Shown in pieces: positions 5,612 through 53,020 of a stretch of DNA of 64,000 bases (position 1 is its first letter; the number at the start of each line of letters is the position of its first letter). The translations under genes were made by a program, and so were the position numbers. The stretch lies in the sequence record NC_041974.1; one strand, 5' to 3'. Below the pieces are notes generated by a model. The model searched no databases. It saw only the letters and a list, made by a program, of their open reading frames with translations, and was not told where the DNA came from.

Positions 5612-6193
5612 ATGTCAAAGAAACTCGATACCCGTAAAAGTATGTTCCTGGCCTTGGTGTTACGCCACCGTCCTGAGGAGATCGGAATTACCCTGGATGA
5701 GAACGGCTGGGCTAAAGTCAGCGAAGTGATCACCGGGTTTACCTTTACCGGGCGTGGGCTCTCATTACCTGAGCTTGAGATCATCGTTGAGACGGATGAG
5801 AAGAAGCGTTACCAGCTCTCTGACGATAAGTGCTATATCCGCGCTGTGCAGGGGCATTCTCACGAAAGCGTGATGAACATGCAGCTGGAAGTGGCGACAC
5901 CGCCAAAGTACTTGTATCACGGCACCCAACAGATCTCCTGTGAGTCGATCGAGCGACAAGGGATCTTGCGCCTTAAACGTTTATATGTCCACCTAACGGA
6001 TGACATCGAAGCGGCTTGGCGCGCAGCAACTCGTAAACGAACAGCCGGTGCAGTCTACCGAATCGACACCGAGAAGATGACGCGGATGGGCCATGTGTTC
6101 TATCGCGCTGAGAACGGGGTTTGGCTGGCGAAGCGCATTCCTTTCTCAGTCATTGAGATGGTTGATGCACATGACGAAGAAACAAGTACCTGA
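5612..6193 (+). CDS. kptA: RNA 2'-phosphotransferase, KptA/Tpt1 family
   Basis: VLRHRP, KKRY, IRAVQGHS, LYHGT and RLYVHL motifs; Arg-His-Arg-Arg catalytic set present. Confidence 0.93.
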   Translation: MSKKLDTRKSMFLALVLRHRPEEIGITLDENGWAKVSEVITGFTFTGRGLSLPELEIIVETDEKKRYQLSDDKCYIRAVQGHSHESVMNMQLEVATPPKYLYHGTQQISCESIERQGILRLKRLYVHLTDDIEAAWRAATRKRTAGAVYRIDTEKMTRMGHVFYRAENGVWLAKRIPFSVIEMVDAHDEETST

Positions 6194-9069: not shown

Positions 9070-9903
9070 ATGTCTGTGATAAAAGATAACCCGGATAACT
9101 GGAAAGTGATTCCGGGTTACTCACGTTATGAAATCAATGAAGTCGGCGTTGTAAGAAAGATACATAACAAGAAGGTGATGAAACAATGGCTGCGTGGTAA
9201 TTATACCGCCACTGCTATCACTTCTGATAATAAGTCAACTAGTAGAATAGAATCTATTCATATTTTACTGTGCCTTACATTTATTGGTCCAAAGCCCTTA
9301 CCTGAACCTGGGCACAAACTTGTTACCGCTAACCACAAGGACGGTAACAAACTTAACAATGTGAGGTCTAATGTAGAATGGTTATCCAATTCTGGTAATA
9401 TTCTGCATGCTTACAAGAACCGGCTAAATAAATCATCACAGCACCTGCGTCTAACCAATGTGGTCTCTGGTGAAGTTGTCGACCTACATTCTTACCGCGA
9501 ATTATCCAAATGGATGGGTAATCCTAATCTGCGCGGACGAATGGAGTATCTGAAGTATCGTAACAAGCTTTATCAAGGCCAGTGGCGAATAGAACTTCTT
9601 GGCGAATCAGAGAAGTCTTCAGGGTCTCGTACCAGTAAACAAGTATGCGTAATGGATGTGGCTAAACGACTTGGATTGAGGGAGGGTGAGTTTGATACTT
9701 TCATCTTTAATTCCATGCATGACGCCGCAGCGGCATTAGGCGTAAGTCGCAAAGGTATTGGTCGATCGATCAGTACCAAAGGACGCCATGTTGTAAATGG
9801 GTACGCTATATCGCTATCATTTGACGATATGGCTAATATCACTTATGACAAAGCGTATGTGGAGATTAGTCTTAAATGGGCGAAACTCAGGGGTCAGAAG
9901 TAA
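9070..9903 (+). mobile_element. Free-standing HNH homing endonuclease gene (NUMOD4-HNH-NUMOD1-like)
   Basis: WKVIPGYSRYEINEVG; HILLCLTF..NHKDGNKLNN..NVEW; FNSMHDAAAALGVS; AT-richer than neighbours. Confidence 0.88.
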
Positions 9904-12139: not shown

Positions 12140-12430
12140 ATGGGTAAAGTCAAAGAGATTTTGTATGGTCGTCGCGGTAGCACGGCCGGTGAGATTCTTA
12201 AGTTAGAATACATGGAGCCGTTAAACCTCACCGTCGATGAAACAGCAAAGAAGCTGAAAGTTGCAAAGTCTACCATCAGCCGGATTATTAATGGCCGTTG
12301 CCGCTTGAGCAAGCCCCTTGCCACCAAACTTGCCAAAGCGTTCGCCACTACGCCGGAATACTGGATGAACTTTGCCGACAACTGCACCAACCCCTATCCA
12401 AACTTACGGGCCAAGGGCTGGTACAGATGA
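12140..12430 (+). CDS. higA: HigA-family XRE helix-turn-helix protein (antitoxin-like)
   Basis: GEILKLEYMEPLNLT..AKKLKVAKSTISRIING..LATKLAKAFATTPEYWMN. Confidence 0.8.
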   Translation: MGKVKEILYGRRGSTAGEILKLEYMEPLNLTVDETAKKLKVAKSTISRIINGRCRLSKPLATKLAKAFATTPEYWMNFADNCTNPYPNLRAKGWYR

Positions 12431-15814: not shown

Positions 15815-16462
15815 ATGGCTGACATTAACTATTACGAACTGATTCGCAACTGGGGTAAAGCCCGTAACATCATCGGTGGTGGCTCTACCCCGATCGATCA
15901 GTTCATCAAAGGTACCACGGAAGCGGCAGAGCTCTGGGCCAATGTATTGGGTAAAGAACCCGCTAAGCTGAAAGATGACATCGGCGACACCCTGGTCTGT
16001 CTGACGCAGTCTTACGGTATTGCTGGCAGTGTGGTGATTGAAGATGCAGCATCTCATGCTGACCAGTACCTGGCATCGCTGCGTAAAGATTACGAAGCCT
16101 ACGGCGAATGGGCACTGAAACGTTTTGCCCTGAAAGTGCTGCGTAGCATGTCTGATATCTCGACGCAGATTGAACACGCCCAGTTCGAAGCTGACCGCCA
16201 TTGCCCGGATCGTCTGTTTGATGAAACTGCAGAGCTGGTAGCCGTCCTGACGGTGATTGCAGAGAACCAGGGCTGGACGCTGGAAGAGTGTCTGGAAGAA
16301 GCGTACAACGACATCAAAGACCGTAAAGGTGTGATGTTCAACGGTGGCTTCGTAAAAGAAGCGAGCCTGTCAGTTGAGCGCGCGCAAGAGATGCTGGCCT
16401 CTGGTACCGTCGGTGGCGTGGGTGCAGAATACCTGAACGGTTATATCAGCGCAAACAGCTAA
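15815..16462 (+). CDS. MazG-like nucleotide pyrophosphohydrolase
   Basis: IRNWGKARNI, EAAEL..LKDDIGDTLV and ECLEEAYNDIKDRKG..NGGFVKE. Confidence 0.85.
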   Translation: MADINYYELIRNWGKARNIIGGGSTPIDQFIKGTTEAAELWANVLGKEPAKLKDDIGDTLVCLTQSYGIAGSVVIEDAASHADQYLASLRKDYEAYGEWALKRFALKVLRSMSDISTQIEHAQFEADRHCPDRLFDETAELVAVLTVIAENQGWTLEECLEEAYNDIKDRKGVMFNGGFVKEASLSVERAQEMLASGTVGGVGAEYLNGYISANS

Positions 16463-30534: not shown

Positions 30535-31167
30535 ATGGCGATTGAAAAAGCAGCAGTACCGGCAAACGTAGTTGAAATCACTGGCAAGACCCTGGAACAA
30601 GCTCGTGGTGATATCCCGAACGCCATCATGTTACTGGACAGCAATACGGTCGATGTGCGCTACACCCCGGCATTCAATAAACTACCTGCTGATCTGCAAC
30701 ACGTCATCCTGGTTGCACAGACCGGTAACCCAGTGATCTCATTAGAGCGCCCACTGGATGCGACCGGAAAGGTTGACGCGACCAACCCGAACATGGTGAT
30801 TGCCGCAGCAGTACAAAAAGATGGCCAGCCATTAGGGATCTACCACCCTGCTCTGATGGGTCGTCTGCGTCAAATTCCAAACGGCTATCTGCTTTATACC
30901 CACTACCACACCAGTAGTAAAGCAGACTTCTCTTATCCGGCGTTTGAGAAAGCCTTGGCGGAATATTGCATGCTGGCGTTTGCGTTAGGTACGAAAGAGC
31001 AACCGGTGGTAATTAACATGCCCGGTCTGCAATGTGCCAATAGCTTCGTCTGGGAAGAGATCAACGGTGAGCGTGTACCGGTACTGAGCCCGCGTCATCT
31101 TGAGCGTGTGAAAGAAGTGATTGCTAACACCATGTTCGCCGGGTCAACGGTTTATCTGGTGCTGTGA
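30535..31167 (+). CDS. Divergent macrodomain-like protein
   Basis: AAGGA RBS before ATG 30535; LLYTHY..DFSYPAFEKAL..INMPGL pattern of phage macrodomains; Gly loops eroded. Confidence 0.45.
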   Translation: MAIEKAAVPANVVEITGKTLEQARGDIPNAIMLLDSNTVDVRYTPAFNKLPADLQHVILVAQTGNPVISLERPLDATGKVDATNPNMVIAAAVQKDGQPLGIYHPALMGRLRQIPNGYLLYTHYHTSSKADFSYPAFEKALAEYCMLAFALGTKEQPVVINMPGLQCANSFVWEEINGERVPVLSPRHLERVKEVIANTMFAGSTVYLVL

Positions 31168-31358
31168 TGAAAGCGTGTCCCCTCTGTGCTTCATCGGCTA
31201 AGACCTACAAATACGCGTTAGTGTTCTGGGGTGTGCGTTGTACCAGCTGTATGTTGTTCCTCAAAGATATGAACACCTCTGAGGCGGCGGCTATTCGTCA
31301 GTGGGATACGCGCATTACCCCCGAAGAGAAAGCAGCAAAGAAACGCAAGAAAGCTTAA
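31164..31358 (+). CDS. Lar-family restriction-alleviation-like Zn-ribbon protein
   Basis: CPLC..VRCTSC..EAAAIRQWDTR. Confidence 0.65.
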   Translation: MMKACPLCASSAKTYKYALVFWGVRCTSCMLFLKDMNTSEAAAIRQWDTRITPEEKAAKKRKKA

Positions 31359-46274: not shown

Positions 46275-47795
46275 ATGGACAAGTTACCAAGTACCGCACT
46301 GCCAAAGGTGTCAATGGTTTTATACACCGATGGCGGTTGTCGTCAAAACATCGGAGGCTGGGGAATACATGGTTATTCCTGGCTGGTTGAAGACGATGAC
46401 AAAAAGAAAAAGAAAAAGCCGGCGCGTGACGTCCCGTCAACGACTGGCTACATTGTAAAAGACGATCCGAAACTCGACAGTCGTGAAGTGGTCAGGCCCC
46501 ACGAAGTGATTGAAGGGTTCGGTGGGATTTTACCTAACACCACAAATAACGTTGCGGAACTTACGGCAACTATTAATGGTATTGACTTAGCACTGCAGCA
46601 GAACACAGAAAAGCTCCTCGTCATCTCCGATTCCAAATATGTCGGCGACAATGCAAAGAACCAATTGCATCGTTGGATGAAAGCCGGCTGGAAGAAAGCG
46701 GATGGCGGGGATGTTGCCAACAAAGAGCTGTGGGAAACCCTCAGCAGCAAACTTGATGAGCTGAAATACCGCGGCATCTCGTTTGACATCGAATGGTTGA
46801 AAGGGCATGCGGGTCACCGTGGAAATCAGTTCGCTGACTACATGGCAACCCGTGGTGTCTTTAAAGGCCGTGTTGGTGACGCTACCCCGTATTATCAGAT
46901 CCAGGATGCTGGTGAGTACGATAAGTACAAAACCGAACGTCCGCGCTTTGTCACGCACTCGCGCTGGTACTTCACGTTACAGACTGAAAAGTTGATGAAC
47001 AAGAATGAACAGGGCTTGTACGAGTATTGCTTTGGCCACCCAAGTAAAGGGGACGCTGATCAGCAGTACTTAGGCAAAGCGTTAGCCGACACCGCCTTTA
47101 GCGTGGTGTGGTTGAAAGCACCTGAAGAGTGTTTGGATCTGGTTTATTCACGCACCAAAGAGATCGCTACCGACGTTTACGGTAACGCCTTCATTGGTCG
47201 CCTGGATAACATTTACAACTCATTCATTCACAAAGAGATCATGGACTACGGCGGGTCGTTATTGCAACGTGCGAATAAGTACAACAATGACATCACCAAC
47301 TGTACCGATGCTCAAGTGGTGCGTGAGTGTAACCCGCCAGGTATCTCTTACCGGGCACTGTCGAATTTAGGACAGCTTAGTAAGATCCTGAATGAATTTG
47401 TCAGCGACAGTTTACCTGCGACAACCAGGGTGGTAGAGATTACTGACAAAATCTACCAGACCGTGAAAGGTAAGAAAGAAGATAAGCTGGCATTGCTCGG
47501 TTCGATTCGTCAAACCGACAAAGCGCTCAAGTTCGATGTACCGTGTGATGTACTCGACAAAGCGATCTCCGTCGAAGTTACAGCCACGCTTGGATTGACC
47601 TTACCCAACCGTAATACGTTAAACGGTCTTACGGAACTCAATCCAAAGGTATACCTGTTCTTGACAAAAGAGTCCGACATTGCATTTCGCTACGGATCGA
47701 TTGTGGTATGCGATGAAGGGTATTGCATCATGGCCAACGTATACGCTGACCTGCGTACGCTGTCAAAAAAGGATCTGGAGCGTTGCGGGCAGTAA
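46275..47795 (+). CDS. rnhA: Ribonuclease H with long C-terminal extension (phiKZ-type)
   Basis: LYTDGGC, TNNVAELTA, VISDSKYV, VANKELW, WLKGHAGHRGNQFAD. Confidence 0.93.
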   Translation: MDKLPSTALPKVSMVLYTDGGCRQNIGGWGIHGYSWLVEDDDKKKKKKPARDVPSTTGYIVKDDPKLDSREVVRPHEVIEGFGGILPNTTNNVAELTATINGIDLALQQNTEKLLVISDSKYVGDNAKNQLHRWMKAGWKKADGGDVANKELWETLSSKLDELKYRGISFDIEWLKGHAGHRGNQFADYMATRGVFKGRVGDATPYYQIQDAGEYDKYKTERPRFVTHSRWYFTLQTEKLMNKNEQGLYEYCFGHPSKGDADQQYLGKALADTAFSVVWLKAPEECLDLVYSRTKEIATDVYGNAFIGRLDNIYNSFIHKEIMDYGGSLLQRANKYNNDITNCTDAQVVRECNPPGISYRALSNLGQLSKILNEFVSDSLPATTRVVEITDKIYQTVKGKKEDKLALLGSIRQTDKALKFDVPCDVLDKAISVEVTATLGLTLPNRNTLNGLTELNPKVYLFLTKESDIAFRYGSIVVCDEGYCIMANVYADLRTLSKKDLERCGQ

Positions 47796-49091: not shown

Positions 49092-50477
49092 ATGTTGTCA
49101 TTCGGTGAATTTGTTGAGAAGTCACGCCCTATTCGACCTTTCTTGAATATCGGCGCGGGCTTTGATATCCCAACCGGTAGCTATCGTTTCGGTAAGCACG
49201 GTGAATCTATTCTTAATGGTGGTCTGGCGCCATTCATTGCGATTGTTGGTAAAGGCAACACCTTTAAAACAGCGATCGGTTGTTTCATGATGACCCGCGT
49301 GCTGGAGCGCTACAATAACTCTAACGGCTTGCACTACGATACCGAGTGTACGTTCAGTGCTGATCGTCTTACCAGTCTTACCAGTCGTCTGGGTCCGAAT
49401 GCTGCTGCAGAGTGGCTGGCCAACGAACGTATCTACCTGACTGATGACTCCATCATTAAAGGTAACCAGTGGTTTAAGAAATCGGTGCAGGAATACTCCG
49501 AAGCGAAGAAGAAAGCCAAAATGGGCACGCTGCCGTTTGTGGATAAAGATGGGAACCTGATCCCGTATCCATACCCGACAGTCAACTTTGGCGATTCCAT
49601 GTCTGAGATGAAATTCGACGACCTGGAAAAGAACTACGCCAAGATGGAAATCGGCCAGGGTGAAATGCAAACGGAAGCCATGCGTGTGTCGAATGCCAAA
49701 CGCATGTTAATCGAAAAGACCCAGGGTTACGCCAACGCCGGCGGCATGTATGTCATCATGACAGCGCACTTAGGTAAAGAGCTGAACATGGATGGTAAAC
49801 CACAAGAGAAGAAAACCACCTTTATGAAACAAGGTGACAAAATCTCTAAGGTGCCTTCACAGATCCTCTCTCTGCCAAACAACGCCTGGGAGATCTCTAC
49901 CGGTACGGTGTTGATTGATAAGAACACCAAAGAGTGGATGTACCCGAAACAGGGTCGCAATGACGTGGATACCAACGGTAACCCGGACATGATCACTCTG
50001 GTGGCGAAGAACCTGCGCGGGAAGAATGGTCCGTCTGGTGTGCCGTGGGAATTCGTGATGTCACAGTCTGAAGGTCTGCTGCCGTCCCTGACTGAGTTCC
50101 ATTACATTAAGAACAACGGTCGTTATGGCCTGGGTGGCAATGACCGTAATTATTATGTTGAATTGTGCCCAGATATCAAGCTGCAGCGCACCACCGTGCG
50201 TGATCGCATCGACGACAACCCTGAGTTACGTCGGGCATTAGAGATCACCATGGAGATGTGTCAGATGCGTTTCCTGTGGCACACCCGCGATCCAAAGTAC
50301 AACATGACTCCTCAGGAACTGCGTGAAGGCCTGGAGAAGAAAGGGTACAAATGGGATCAGCTGCTCAACACCCGTGGGTTCTGGACGTTTGAAGAAGACA
50401 ACCATCCATTACCATTCTTAAGCACAATGGATCTACTCCGCATGTATCATGATGAGTATCGCCCATACTGGCTGTAA
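49092..50477 (+). CDS. uvsX: UvsX/RecA-like recombinase (phiKZ-type)
   Basis: LNIGAGFDIPTG; GKGNTFKT Walker A; HYDTE; NFGDSMSE; NLRGKNGPSG. Confidence 0.85.
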   Translation: MLSFGEFVEKSRPIRPFLNIGAGFDIPTGSYRFGKHGESILNGGLAPFIAIVGKGNTFKTAIGCFMMTRVLERYNNSNGLHYDTECTFSADRLTSLTSRLGPNAAAEWLANERIYLTDDSIIKGNQWFKKSVQEYSEAKKKAKMGTLPFVDKDGNLIPYPYPTVNFGDSMSEMKFDDLEKNYAKMEIGQGEMQTEAMRVSNAKRMLIEKTQGYANAGGMYVIMTAHLGKELNMDGKPQEKKTTFMKQGDKISKVPSQILSLPNNAWEISTGTVLIDKNTKEWMYPKQGRNDVDTNGNPDMITLVAKNLRGKNGPSGVPWEFVMSQSEGLLPSLTEFHYIKNNGRYGLGGNDRNYYVELCPDIKLQRTTVRDRIDDNPELRRALEITMEMCQMRFLWHTRDPKYNMTPQELREGLEKKGYKWDQLLNTRGFWTFEEDNHPLPFLSTMDLLRMYHDEYRPYWL

Positions 50478-50491
50478 GTGTACCCACTGTG

Positions 50492-50520
50492 GGAGAGGGT
50501 TATCCCTCTCCTTCTTATAC
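50492..50520 (+). terminator. Hairpin with variant TTATACC motif
   Basis: GGAGAGGG-TTAT-CCCTCTCC-TTCTTATACCG. Confidence 0.7.
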
Positions 50521-50557
50521 CGTCAGTAGAGGGAAATAAGCTAATAGGAAGCAGTAT

Positions 50558-50977
50558 ATGCTTAACAAAGAAATACGCATTGTCGTTGCGTCGACTAAAG
50601 GTTTCAACGACGCAGAGCGTTTAAAACTGACTATTGACGGCCTCCTGGAAGATATCTACTACCTCAACGAAGGGGTAGGTGATGAGGACGAGGAGTTGAT
50701 CACTGATGCCAAGATCGTTTTCATCACCAATGGCGAACACAAAACAGCGGCTGAGTTGCTGCCTGGTGTGTTGGGTGATCGGAACATCGACATCGAAGTG
50801 ATCAAGGTTGATTGGTCAAAAGGTAAGAAAGCGTTTTTTGATAACTGCGCTGTATTGGGTGCGAAGTCGACCCACGGCGTCATTTTTACGGACAGCAAAG
50901 ATGACGGGATGCAGACACTGCTGAAAGCATGTCTCGATGCCGGCTCACGCGTTCGTACTTATAGCTCTGCTATTTGA
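50558..50977 (+). CDS. Divergent SLOG (YspA-like) domain protein
   Basis: IVVASTKGFND..IVFITNG..IKVDWSKGKKAFFDN..VIFTD..GMQTLL pattern parallels the YspA SLOG motifs. Confidence 0.6.
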   Translation: MLNKEIRIVVASTKGFNDAERLKLTIDGLLEDIYYLNEGVGDEDEELITDAKIVFITNGEHKTAAELLPGVLGDRNIDIEVIKVDWSKGKKAFFDNCAVLGAKSTHGVIFTDSKDDGMQTLLKACLDAGSRVRTYSSAI

Positions 50978-50991
50978 GAAAGGTAACCCCC

Positions 50992-51438
50992 ATGATAACC
51001 TCAGAAGCTCACGTTAGTATACTTGACGTTAATGTCACCCACGTTATATGCACAGTTAATTGCGAAGGGCATATGGGTCGTGGCATAGCCTTGTATCTGC
51101 GTAAGTGTATTCCGGGGCTATATGAGCGGTATAAACACCTGTGCAGTTTAGGGATCATCACGGTAGACAAACTCTGGATCTACCCATCACACCCCCGTCA
51201 GATTCTCTGCTTTCCAACCAAAGATAAAACCTGGGAAGACAGCAAGCTTGAATGGATCGAAGCCAATCTCATAAAGCTTCGTGACAACTACAAAACAAAA
51301 GGCATTGTCTCTGTGGCGATGCCTCCTCTTGGATGTGGAAACGGTAACCTAAAGTGGGATGAGGTGCGGAGCCTCATTTATGCCATCTTGGGTGATTGTG
51401 ACCTTGAAGTCCACATCTGTTTAGGTAAACCGAAGTGA
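50992..51438 (+). CDS. Macrodomain protein, DarG/Poa1p-like
   Basis: TVNCEGHMGRGIA, CFPTK (DarG catalytic Lys position) and SVAMPPLGCGNGNLKW; AAAGG RBS before ATG 50992. Confidence 0.88.
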   Translation: MITSEAHVSILDVNVTHVICTVNCEGHMGRGIALYLRKCIPGLYERYKHLCSLGIITVDKLWIYPSHPRQILCFPTKDKTWEDSKLEWIEANLIKLRDNYKTKGIVSVAMPPLGCGNGNLKWDEVRSLIYAILGDCDLEVHICLGKPK

Positions 51439-51467
51439 GGGAAACACCCTGAATAGGAGCCAGTATT

Positions 51468-52349
51468 ATGTCTGATAACGCACGCGTTTTACCCGATCCA
51501 CGCGAAGATGGCAAGACGCACATCAACGTCTATAGCCGTGGCGCTTCCTGGCTAGGACAGCAACTTTCTAATATGTCCTACTACGACTTCGCACATCCAC
51601 GCTACGGCGTGTTCGCCTCGTTGGAGGGCTTCTGGTATTGGTTGTCTACGGGCAAGCAACACGAGGAGTTACGGAAGCTTGCCGGGGTCAAAGCGAAAAT
51701 GACCGGCCGGGAGTTCGAGACGATCCCAAATGAAAACTTTGAAGAAGAGTTCAAAGAAGCCATGCGTCTGCGTCTGGAGCAACACCCGATCATCGCCAAT
51801 GCCCTGGCTGAATCGTTACTGCCGTTAAAGCACTACTATTGTTACGGCGGGAAAGTGATCGACTTGTATGACCGCCACAAATGGCAAATGGACTTCTACG
51901 AGGAGTGGCGTAAAGCCAATGCCCCCGAAGACACCACCTTGGTATTGTTGATCTCTGGCTCACGTAAAGAGAAAGACTACGACGCCTTTAAGCACATCGT
52001 GATGACCTACCTGCAACCGTATATCGACAAGATAAAGGACACGTACAAAATCACCCTGCTTTCGGGGCTCGCCTGGGAAGGTCCCGATGACATGGCAATT
52101 CGTCTGTGTCGGGAAGAAGGCTTCATGTTGATTGGTCTGCCGGCGAAGTGGAAAGAGCAAGGCAAAGCCGCGGGCATGATCCGCAATGGTGCCATGGGGC
52201 GGTTGTGTAACAAGGCTTTGGTGTTCTGGGATGGTGAGTCACCGGGGACAAAAGGGATGATTGATTACCTGAAGAAAAATACTATAGACCATCTTGTGTA
52301 TTTACACGGTAAACATGAACCTGACTGGAAAGCCCCGGAGACATCATGA
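51468..52349 (+). CDS. NADAR (T4 gp30.3-like) domain fused to a SLOG/YspA domain
   Basis: N-half LSNM..F..G.FASLEGF, G..AK..GR, QH..ANAL..LKH; C-half LISGSRK, LSGLAWEGPD, PAKW..GKAAGMIRNG and FWDGESPGTKGMI. Confidence 0.78.
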   Translation: MSDNARVLPDPREDGKTHINVYSRGASWLGQQLSNMSYYDFAHPRYGVFASLEGFWYWLSTGKQHEELRKLAGVKAKMTGREFETIPNENFEEEFKEAMRLRLEQHPIIANALAESLLPLKHYYCYGGKVIDLYDRHKWQMDFYEEWRKANAPEDTTLVLLISGSRKEKDYDAFKHIVMTYLQPYIDKIKDTYKITLLSGLAWEGPDDMAIRLCREEGFMLIGLPAKWKEQGKAAGMIRNGAMGRLCNKALVFWDGESPGTKGMIDYLKKNTIDHLVYLHGKHEPDWKAPETS

Positions 52350-53020
52350 CCCCAGCACGCGAACAGACCCAGCAATTTGTGATCGAGGCTATTGCTGAGA
52401 TTCTACCCGGTTCTAAGAACCGGGATATCTATATCGACTTCTTCTCGCGGTTGAGCGATGAGGCGTTTGATGCCCTGATGCAGCGGATGGATGAAGACCA
52501 GGAGATCTTCCCCTTCTACCATCCGAACTTTACCGGTACGGTAATTGATGTTGAACGTGTGATCAAGTTAATTGAAAAGCACGGCGACACCATCATGGAG
52601 CAGCTCTGGGATATCGACCCGGAAACCGGACTGCAGTACCTGACCCCGTTGAAGTATCCGGTGCTGTTACTTCCGCTGCGTATTCAGCAGCAGAAGCTGC
52701 AGAAGAAGATGTCGATTCCAAAAGACAACAACCACATCGACGATCTGACTAACCAGCCCACCACCGAATCCAAAGGGGCTTCCTTGTCTTACCCGGAAGT
52801 GCAGATCATCTATGCCATGGGTGGCGACAAGATCCTGGAAGAGACCATGAAGGTTCGTGGTGGTGATGAGAAGGCGTTTCGTGATTACAATAACGAAATC
52901 ATTGCAAGCGGCGGTGTCACCATTGGTGCAATCAGCAGCAGCAAGACCAAGGTGAAGTCCACCAAAACCGTGCAAGTGATTCTTGAGGCCATGCACCTGA
53001 GCAACAACCTGGCCAGTTAA
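52346..53020 (+). CDS. Virion RNA polymerase beta subunit, C-terminal fragment (phiKZ gp149-like)
   Basis: KYPVLLLPLRIQQQKLQKK..IDDLTNQP..KGASLSYPEVQIIYAMG..EETMKVRGGD aligns with the RpoB C-terminal GQRFGEME..QEMLTVKSDD region. Confidence 0.85.
   Translation: MTPAREQTQQFVIEAIAEILPGSKNRDIYIDFFSRLSDEAFDALMQRMDEDQEIFPFYHPNFTGTVIDVERVIKLIEKHGDTIMEQLWDIDPETGLQYLTPLKYPVLLLPLRIQQQKLQKKMSIPKDNNHIDDLTNQPTTESKGASLSYPEVQIIYAMGGDKILEETMKVRGGDEKAFRDYNNEIIASGGVTIGAISSSKTKVKSTKTVQVILEAMHLSNNLAS

Follow-up and report, generated by a model that had tools for sequence, protein, structure and literature searches.

What do three consecutive genes between the recombinase gene uvsX and the gene of a virion RNA polymerase beta fragment do for the phage that carries them? 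They lie in a stretch of 64,000 nucleotides of sequence record NC_041974.1, called the window here, of which positions 50000-53000 are 100% identical to positions 112000-115000 of Erwinia phage vB_EamM_Simmy50. The window thus corresponds to bases 62001-126000 of this 271 kb genome. Simmy50 belongs to the genus Agricanvirus, its nearest relatives are RAY, Deimos-Minion, Special G and Ea35-70, and RAY is a characterised nucleus-forming chimallivirus (Prichard et al. 2023). The three genes are gp154, gp155 and gp156 of Simmy50 and correspond to RAY gp151, gp152 and gp153. We propose that together they form a module which removes ADP-ribose from the bases of phage single-stranded DNA (ssDNA) inside the phage nucleus, and we put the probability of this reading at roughly 0.55. 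Its firm part, judged by sequence, is the identity of gp155 as AdfM, the macrodomain eraser of related phages.

The locus and its macrodomain

An initial annotation, made from the letters of the window alone, had described a SLOG, a macrodomain and a NADAR-SLOG gene in a row between uvsX and the polymerase fragment, and this arrangement is found:

49092..50477, + strand: UvsX-like recombinase, upstream flank (PHROG 97, 1.8e-56; flank syntenic in AH06, pEa_SNUABM_48, SA002, Proteus phage 10 and Ralstonia RSL2)
50558..50977, + strand: gp154, putative diverged acidic SLOG paralogue (SLOG1), 139 amino acids (hhalign to the gp156 SLOG; PHROG 289, 1.6e-6)
50992..51438, + strand: gp155, DarG2-type AdfM-like macrodomain, 148 amino acids (Pfam, NCBIfam, PADLOC and PDB matches)
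51468..52349, + strand: gp156, NADAR-like and SLOG two-domain protein, 293 amino acids (AlphaFold2; Foldseek against PDB and BFVD)
51495..51917, + strand: NADAR-like domain of gp156, residues ~10-150 (family profiles, Foldseek, hhalign)
51939..52307, + strand: SLOG2 domain (YAcAr/DUF2493) of gp156, residues ~158-280 (Pfam YAcAr, Foldseek, DprA-type motifs)
52346..53020, + strand: RNA polymerase beta subunit fragment, downstream flank (PHROG 3233, 1.7e-99; synteny)

The consecutive open reading frames of the module are separated by 14 and 29 bases, and the start of the polymerase fragment overlaps the stop of gp156. For gp155 the annotated ATG gives the 148 amino acids listed, while the mechanical open reading frame begins at a TTG at position 50974. 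Measured against phage AH06, all parts of the module have ratios of nonsynonymous to synonymous substitution rates (dN/dS) of 0.04-0.12, indicating that the genes are real and under purifying selection.

The gp155 protein is matched by the Pfam model Macro (1.2e-9), by the NCBIfam DarG equivalog (1.2e-37, over the macro part only) and by the PADLOC DarG model (7.4e-41). Its top matches among the PDB sequences are the DarG2 antitoxin macrodomains of M. tuberculosis (5m3i, 1e-22) and Thermus aquaticus (5m31, 8e-21), followed by TARG1 (3e-6) and Appr-1''-p phosphatases (0.14). The lysine of the DarG FPTK motif, which the initial annotation had already picked out, is K77 (codon 51220-51222) and aligns in the same FPTK context. 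With PhiKZ gp104 (AdfM) gp155 shares 34% identity (E 6e-19), and N23 (codon 51058-51060), F74-P-T-K77 and the P111-P-L-G-C loop (PPLGC-NG) are invariant between both proteins. The search also matches the AdfM gene of Erwinia phage Asesino, and the phiEco32-type macrodomain is a closer relative than PhiKZ gp104, with 43% identity.

The chimallivirus macrodomain was named AdfM by Morgan et al. 2026, who report that PhiKZ gp104 strips DarT2-made ADP-ribose from DNA, that an N23A change lowers this activity and that the AdfM proteins of PhiKZ, PhiPA3 and Erwinia phage Asesino localise to the phage nucleus; according to the same paper, DarG-class macrodomains act only on DNA (PMC13309987). On sequence grounds gp155 is an orthologue-level relative of AdfM and belongs to the DarG2-type macrodomain class. 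Both are orphan DarG2-type macrodomains of nucleus-forming phages, about 150 amino acids long, with the asparagine, the FPTK lysine and the glycine loop in common. By homology to the tested enzyme, gp155 would act as the local AdfM and take ADP-ribose off thymidine after DarT2 attack. The surroundings of the two genes differ: the PhiKZ gene is solitary, as the 13 kb inspected contain neither a SLOG nor a NADAR, whereas gp155 is part of a SLOG-Macro-NADAR-SLOG cluster and, in sister phages of Simmy50, the macrodomain is fused to NADAR or SLOG domains.

We also considered gp155 as a DarG antitoxin proper of a type II/IV toxin-antitoxin system, and this candidate was ruled out. Unlike DarG2, gp155 covers only positions 8-145 of the 338 positions of the NCBIfam DarG model, with a score of 130 below the cut-off of 250; the C-terminal DarT-binding domain is absent, and no DarT adjoins the gene, the neighbours being UvsX, SLOG and the polymerase fragment.

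The NADAR-like and SLOG domains

The gp156 protein is 100% identical to RAY gp153, and its AlphaFold2 model shows two domains with a predicted local distance difference test score (pLDDT) of 90.6. Searching the PDB sequences with gp156 as a single sequence gave nothing useful, and NCBIfam yielded no NADAR match for it. A profile of the N-terminal domain built from 7 sequences has a NADAR structure (PDB: 8bau) as its sole PDB match (0.072), and with 61 sequences the sole match is again 8bau (8.5e-4). Foldseek aligns the domain to 8bau with probability 1.0 and a template modelling score of 0.52 on the target over 174 columns, and hhalign of the domain family against T4 gp30.3 gives a probability of 90.2% (E 1.5e-6). 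In the BFVD, the Foldseek search of gp156 returned mostly SLOG matches and T4 gp30.3 was not among the best 50. Within the family, the Pfam Phage_30_3 model is reached by four of the 61 standalone and three of the 91 multidomain members, and the Pfam NADAR model by one relative, possibly via a second domain. For gp156, AlphaFold, Foldseek and hhalign support the NADAR-like and SLOG2 folds that had been called from the sequence, together with the likeness to T4 gp30.3.

T4 gp30.3 is AdfN, a NADAR that removes the guanine-linked ADP-ribose made by DarT1 (PMC11825919, PMC11125620). Its catalytic glutamate (E36, corresponding to PnNADAR E43) is aligned in three independent alignments to E53 of gp156 (codon 51624-51626), which is at least 90% conserved. 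H122 (codon 51831-51833) is equally at least 90% conserved and lies at the terminal beta-hairpin of the model. In known NADARs the charged residue of the last strand is Glu in YbiA, Asp in BC4488 and His in the phage gp30.3 type; H122 is aligned with the T4 gp30.3 histidine by MAFFT alone, as the hhalign alignment ends before this region and the papers give no number for the T4 residue. The lysine that is conserved across NADARs (PnNADAR K50, T4 K43), and of which K43 is needed for full T4 AdfN activity, is aligned to S60 of gp156 in a variable column; K63 is near this position but is not conserved. Furthermore, the family has an extra N-terminal segment with invariant H18 and N20, which is absent from T4 gp30.3. 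As the glutamate and probably the histidine are kept and the lysine is altered, the domain is likely a NADAR superfamily member near the gp30.3 branch with an altered site. It has the fold and the catalytic Glu in common with AdfN and PnNADAR (8bau) and probably shares with AdfN the terminal-hairpin His typical of phage NADARs, but AdfN is free-standing, whereas the gp156 domain is fused to a SLOG, lacks the conserved Lys and carries the H18/N20 segment.

Hydrolysis of guanine-linked ADP-ribose on DNA is known for the T4, Bas32 and Bas60 NADARs only. The gp156 NADAR domain would split off ADP-ribose that is bound N-glycosidically to guanine, and perhaps also to other bases; because the conserved lysine is missing, this activity is one that we infer. 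The expectation that the phage holds erasers for both DarT chemistries thus stands at the level of homology: the macrodomain half is published as AdfM, and the guanine half would have to work without the NADAR lysine.

The C-terminal domain of gp156 is matched by Pfam YAcAr (Pfam: PF10686; E 1.9e-5), but the 24.8 bits of this match fall short of the gathering score (28.2). The same family is carried by all four of the nearest standalone SLOG2 relatives and by 18 of the 91 fusion relatives. Foldseek places the domain with ShosA, DprA, ThsA, LOG and TRPM2, and the sole PDB match of the SLOG2 profile is DprA (PDB: 3uqz; 1.9e-3). Two motifs stand out, G164-S-R166 (51957-51965) and A235-G-M-I-R239-N240 (52170-52187). 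In an alignment of the SLOG2 domains of six phages with five standalone YAcAr proteins, the G and R of the first motif and the A, G, R and N of the second are invariant. The motifs by which DprA holds the bases of ssDNA are G-S/T/A-R and F/L/Y-x-x-R-N/D, with the variant A-M-x-R-N/D (Wang et al., PMC3950713), and both are present in SLOG2. SLOG2 therefore resembles the YAcAr/DUF2493 domains and DprA (3uqz and the HpDprA-ssDNA complex) in its Rossmannoid SLOG fold as well as in both base-holding motifs.

Database entries label gp156 'DprA-like' or 'hypothetical', and gp155 'phosphatase'. We rejected gp156 as DprA proper: unlike DprA, it has no match to the Pfam DprA model (Pfam: PF02481), with which eight of the 91 relatives cross-match weakly, nor the domains that flank the SLOG in DprA. 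The ThsA SLOG of Thoeris (PDB: 6lhx, 7uxs) has the same superfamily fold as SLOG2 (Foldseek E ~1e-2 to 7e-2), but this match is weaker than those to DprA and ShosA, and SLOG2 has neither a sequence-level match to ThsA nor an effector domain. In the literature we found no tested member of the YAcAr family. With both motifs of the DprA ssDNA pocket, SLOG2 would tether the eraser to ssDNA or to the modified nucleotide, and we infer that it may be a substrate-binding replacement for the toxin-binding domain of cellular DarG.

The first gene of the module, gp154, had been called a divergent SLOG, and the domain call probably holds: hhalign aligns gp154 to the gp156 SLOG profile with a probability of 95.6% (E 1e-8). 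A direct Pfam YAcAr match to gp154 reaches 0.19 only, although two gp154 relatives carry PF10686, and a single-sequence search of the PDB sequences gave nothing useful. The AlphaFold model is weak (pLDDT 66), with a Rossmannoid beta-alpha order, and the Foldseek matches to this model are all generic Rossmann folds, among them YpsA at rank 17. The residues of the YAcAr/DprA motifs are exchanged in gp154 for another set, which is invariant in its own family; only the basic residue of the first DprA motif is retained, and the Arg of the second is lost. The protein is acidic, with an isoelectric point (pI) of 4.8, and its dN/dS is 0.12. The family is confined to Agricanvirus, pEa_SNUABM_37/48, SA002 and Proteus phage 10 and always lies directly 3' of UvsX. 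We take gp154 for a probable diverged SLOG paralogue without the DprA motifs; our guess is that it serves as a partner or regulator of gp155 and gp156.

Domain shuffling and distribution

The order RNase H, UvsX, module and polymerase fragment is syntenic across distant phages and the content of the module varies, with its parts shuffled as fusions between conserved flanks. The interval between UvsX and the polymerase fragment contains:

Simmy50 and RAY: SLOG1, Macro, NADAR-SLOG2
AH06: SLOG1, Macro, NADAR-SLOG2 and two small inserted genes
pEa_SNUABM_48: SLOG1, then a single Macro-NADAR-SLOG2 protein of 429 amino acids
Salmonella phage SA002: SLOG1, Macro-NADAR, partial Macro-NADAR-SLOG2
Proteus phage 10: SLOG1, Macro-SLOG2; NADAR absent
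Ralstonia phage RSL2: a SLOG2-like gene only; a NADAR-like gene lies 4 kb downstream

As SLOG2 is found with Macro, with NADAR or with both across these relatives, it is a partner that both erasers have in common. UvsX is 85% identical to its pEa_SNUABM_48 counterpart and the SLOGs and NADAR are 44-57% identical to theirs, indicating that the module diverges faster than its flanks.

The two insertions of AH06, which are absent from Simmy50, encode a hypothetical protein of 115 amino acids (L001:5445-5792) and an annotated 'RNA binding protein' of 94 amino acids (L001:6677-6961). SA002 has a tandem eraser duplication (L011:5427-7303), in which the Macro-NADAR gene is followed by a partial macrodomain with a second NADAR-like domain and SLOG2. 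The lone SLOG2-like gene and the separate NADAR-like gene of RSL2 are ORF049 and ORF042 (L013:5941-6429 and L013:10097-10624). In the unrelated podophage phiEco32, an extracytoplasmic function sigma factor gene lies between the genes of the DarG-type macrodomain with 43% identity and of a YAcAr SLOG (gp35-gp37, L014:4778-6274); here too an eraser and a SLOG accompany a gene of transcription.

Beyond this locus, the NADAR-like family comprises 1959 representatives at 50% identity (E<=1e-3). It is present in 535 phage records, including Ackermannviridae, giant rak2-like phages and Vibrio and Ralstonia phages, and among 185,579 cellular species genomes at just 19 loci, most of them phage-like. 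Single fusions connect it to Pyr_excise, BRCT and an exonuclease, which we count in favour of the eraser module. SLOG2-like (YAcAr/DUF2493) domains are found in 526 phage records, including the HelB helicase of ICP1. Two metagenomic contexts of relatives were uninformative. The NADAR-SLOG fusion had at first not been recognised as an architecture already described, but jumbo-phage YAcAr SLOG domains that are either fused with Macro, NADAR and DUF4326 or linked to them are part of the purely computational catalogues of Iyer et al. 2021 and 2022 (PMC7824862, PMC9503650). The domain combinations reported there are the same as those seen here, both as fusions and as conserved neighbourhoods.

Several other features of the window were recorded on the way. 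Within the 80-base gap 3' of the UvsX stop, a hairpin of 9 pairs is followed by a T-rich stretch (50491-50512, + strand). It is kept in Simmy50, AH06, pEa_SNUABM_48, SA002 and Proteus phage 10, with compensatory changes on both sides at three pairs, and possibly serves as a terminator or to stabilise RNA, dividing UvsX from the module. Matches to sigma-70 promoters are at chance level. In the 'ribonuclease' gene upstream of the block (46275-47795, + strand, ~506 amino acids), Pfam RNase H spans residues 93-202 only. Annotated candidates for host-conflict or selfish functions are a helix-turn-helix antitoxin-like gene (12140-12430), a MazG-like pyrophosphatase (15815-16462), a Lar-like restriction alleviation gene (31167-31358) and a homing endonuclease (9070-9903), which adjoins the ribonucleotide reductase small subunit.

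DNA-bound or soluble ADP-ribose

Several points weigh against an eraser module acting on ssDNA in the phage nucleus. The N-terminal domain of gp156 has no Pfam match at all, even when it is searched in isolation at E<=10, so neither NADAR (Pfam: PF08719) nor Phage_30_3 (Pfam: PF08010) is detected, and its NADAR lysine is altered. The T4 NADAR itself is fully active only with an additional phage factor, and in two studies it gave no rescue of DarT1 toxicity in uninfected cells. SLOG2 is not accompanied by the SAM and C-terminal winged-helix domains of DprA, and with a pI of 7.1 it is neutral, so that its net charge does not indicate a strongly basic DNA-binding surface. A glycine-rich SLOG pocket of the same kind binds free nucleotides in LOG and ThsA. 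None of the 19 cellular loci of the NADAR-like family adjoins DarT; as these loci are also mostly phage-like, the family shows no toxin-antitoxin linkage. Its commonest fusion partners are DUF4326 (21 of 91) and DUF488-N3a. DarTG, finally, is apparently rare in the E. amylovora pangenome, although its presence there is in itself a point in favour.

For exactly these domain combinations there is a published prediction. In the model of Iyer, Burroughs, Anantharaman and Aravind, the SLOG is a sensor or an N-glycosidase, Macro and NADAR differ in the bond that they cleave and phosphates are taken off by DUF4326; the module would process or capture soluble ADP-ribose derivatives, either immune signals, for example cyclic ADP-ribose isomers, or toxic ADP-ribose phosphates. 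The prevalent fusions to DUF4326 and DUF488-N3a fit this model, as Iyer et al. read both domains as phosphoesterases on soluble ADP-ribose products; the ThsA SLOG and LOG are among the fold matches of SLOG2, and with the NADAR lysine missing the substrate may differ from DNA. However, gp155 belongs to the DarG class that is described as DNA-only (PMC13309987), DprA and ShosA outrank ThsA in the sequence and fold searches, both DprA ssDNA motifs are kept, and PADLOC gave no Thoeris-type match for the module proteins. Moreover, tagged RAY gp153, called DprA by Prichard et al. 2023, sits with the phage DNA in the nucleus, as the AdfM proteins do, whereas the cytoplasm is where the known signals arise and are sensed. 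The predictions of Iyer et al. were made without experiments and before AdfM, AdfN and the localisation in RAY had been described; these later findings move the weight of evidence from soluble signals towards DNA. We regard an action on soluble derivatives as unlikely, though it is a serious competitor, and the idea of the initial annotation that signals of the Thoeris type might be sequestered by the SLOG domains found no support.

The nuclear position of RAY gp153 together with UvsX, and its annotation as DprA-like, would also suit SLOG proteins that act as DprA-like recombination mediators and load or assist the adjacent UvsX on ssDNA in these phages, which have no UvsY. Iyer et al. 2021 propose such a role for jumbo-phage DprA-like proteins, SLOG2 has the DprA ssDNA motifs, and a SLOG gene is directly 3' of UvsX in six of six phage lineages compared, standing alone in the distant Ralstonia RSL2. 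This explanation and the nuclear eraser module overlap on ssDNA binding. A mediator is nevertheless rather improbable: gp156 has YAcAr and not DprA as its top family and is without the accessory domains of DprA, gp153 is outside the chimallivirus core genome, several lineages have this SLOG in one polypeptide with ADP-ribose erasers, and in phiEco32 it is linked to a macrodomain with no UvsX nearby. Housekeeping of RNA repair, which had been raised as an alternative at the outset, is more improbable still. Here the module would clear the ADP-ribose 1''-2'' cyclic phosphate and Appr-1''-p left by the phage RNA 2'-phosphotransferase (KptA/Tpt1), which is annotated at 5612-6193 (+ strand); the old 'phosphatase' label of gp155 and an RNA-repair RlaP protein next to one member of the NADAR-like family are in line with it. 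But gp155 is a DarG/TARG1-class macrodomain, matching DarG at 1e-22 and Appr-1''-p phosphatases at only 0.14, 45 kb separate KptA from the module, with which it shows no synteny, and the RNA ligase RtcB of RAY is cytoplasmic whereas gp153 is nuclear.

We thus favour a module that frees the bases of phage ssDNA from ADP-ribose in the nucleus. DarT toxins act on ssDNA and are not fully excluded by the phage nucleus (PMC13309987). A more detailed version of this proposal, possible but put forward only tentatively, is that the DprA-like SLOG reads ssDNA or the modified nucleotide and that Macro and NADAR are exchangeable heads which free replication and recombination intermediates beside UvsX from ADP-ribose on thymine, guanine and possibly cytosine; the acidic SLOG paralogue might then be a regulator or a nucleic-acid mimic.

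The function of the macrodomain is known from related phages and the fusions of SLOG with Macro and NADAR were catalogued previously; the remainder of the module's role is predicted here. The database labels of gp155 ('phosphatase') and gp156 ('DprA-like' or 'hypothetical') can be corrected. If the proposal is true, the locus shows a chimallivirus covering more than one DarT chemistry and gives a first functional handle on two families, the NADAR-like family that Pfam does not recognise (535 phage records) and the YAcAr/DUF2493 SLOG (526 phage records). The series of fusions at a single locus, from separate genes over Macro-NADAR-SLOG and Macro-SLOG to SLOG alone, is a comparative set for the contribution of the SLOG to an eraser. 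Should the eraser indeed be anchored to its substrate in this way, the YAcAr/DUF2493 domains of more than 500 phage genomes would generally be DNA-binding modules rather than small-molecule sensors.

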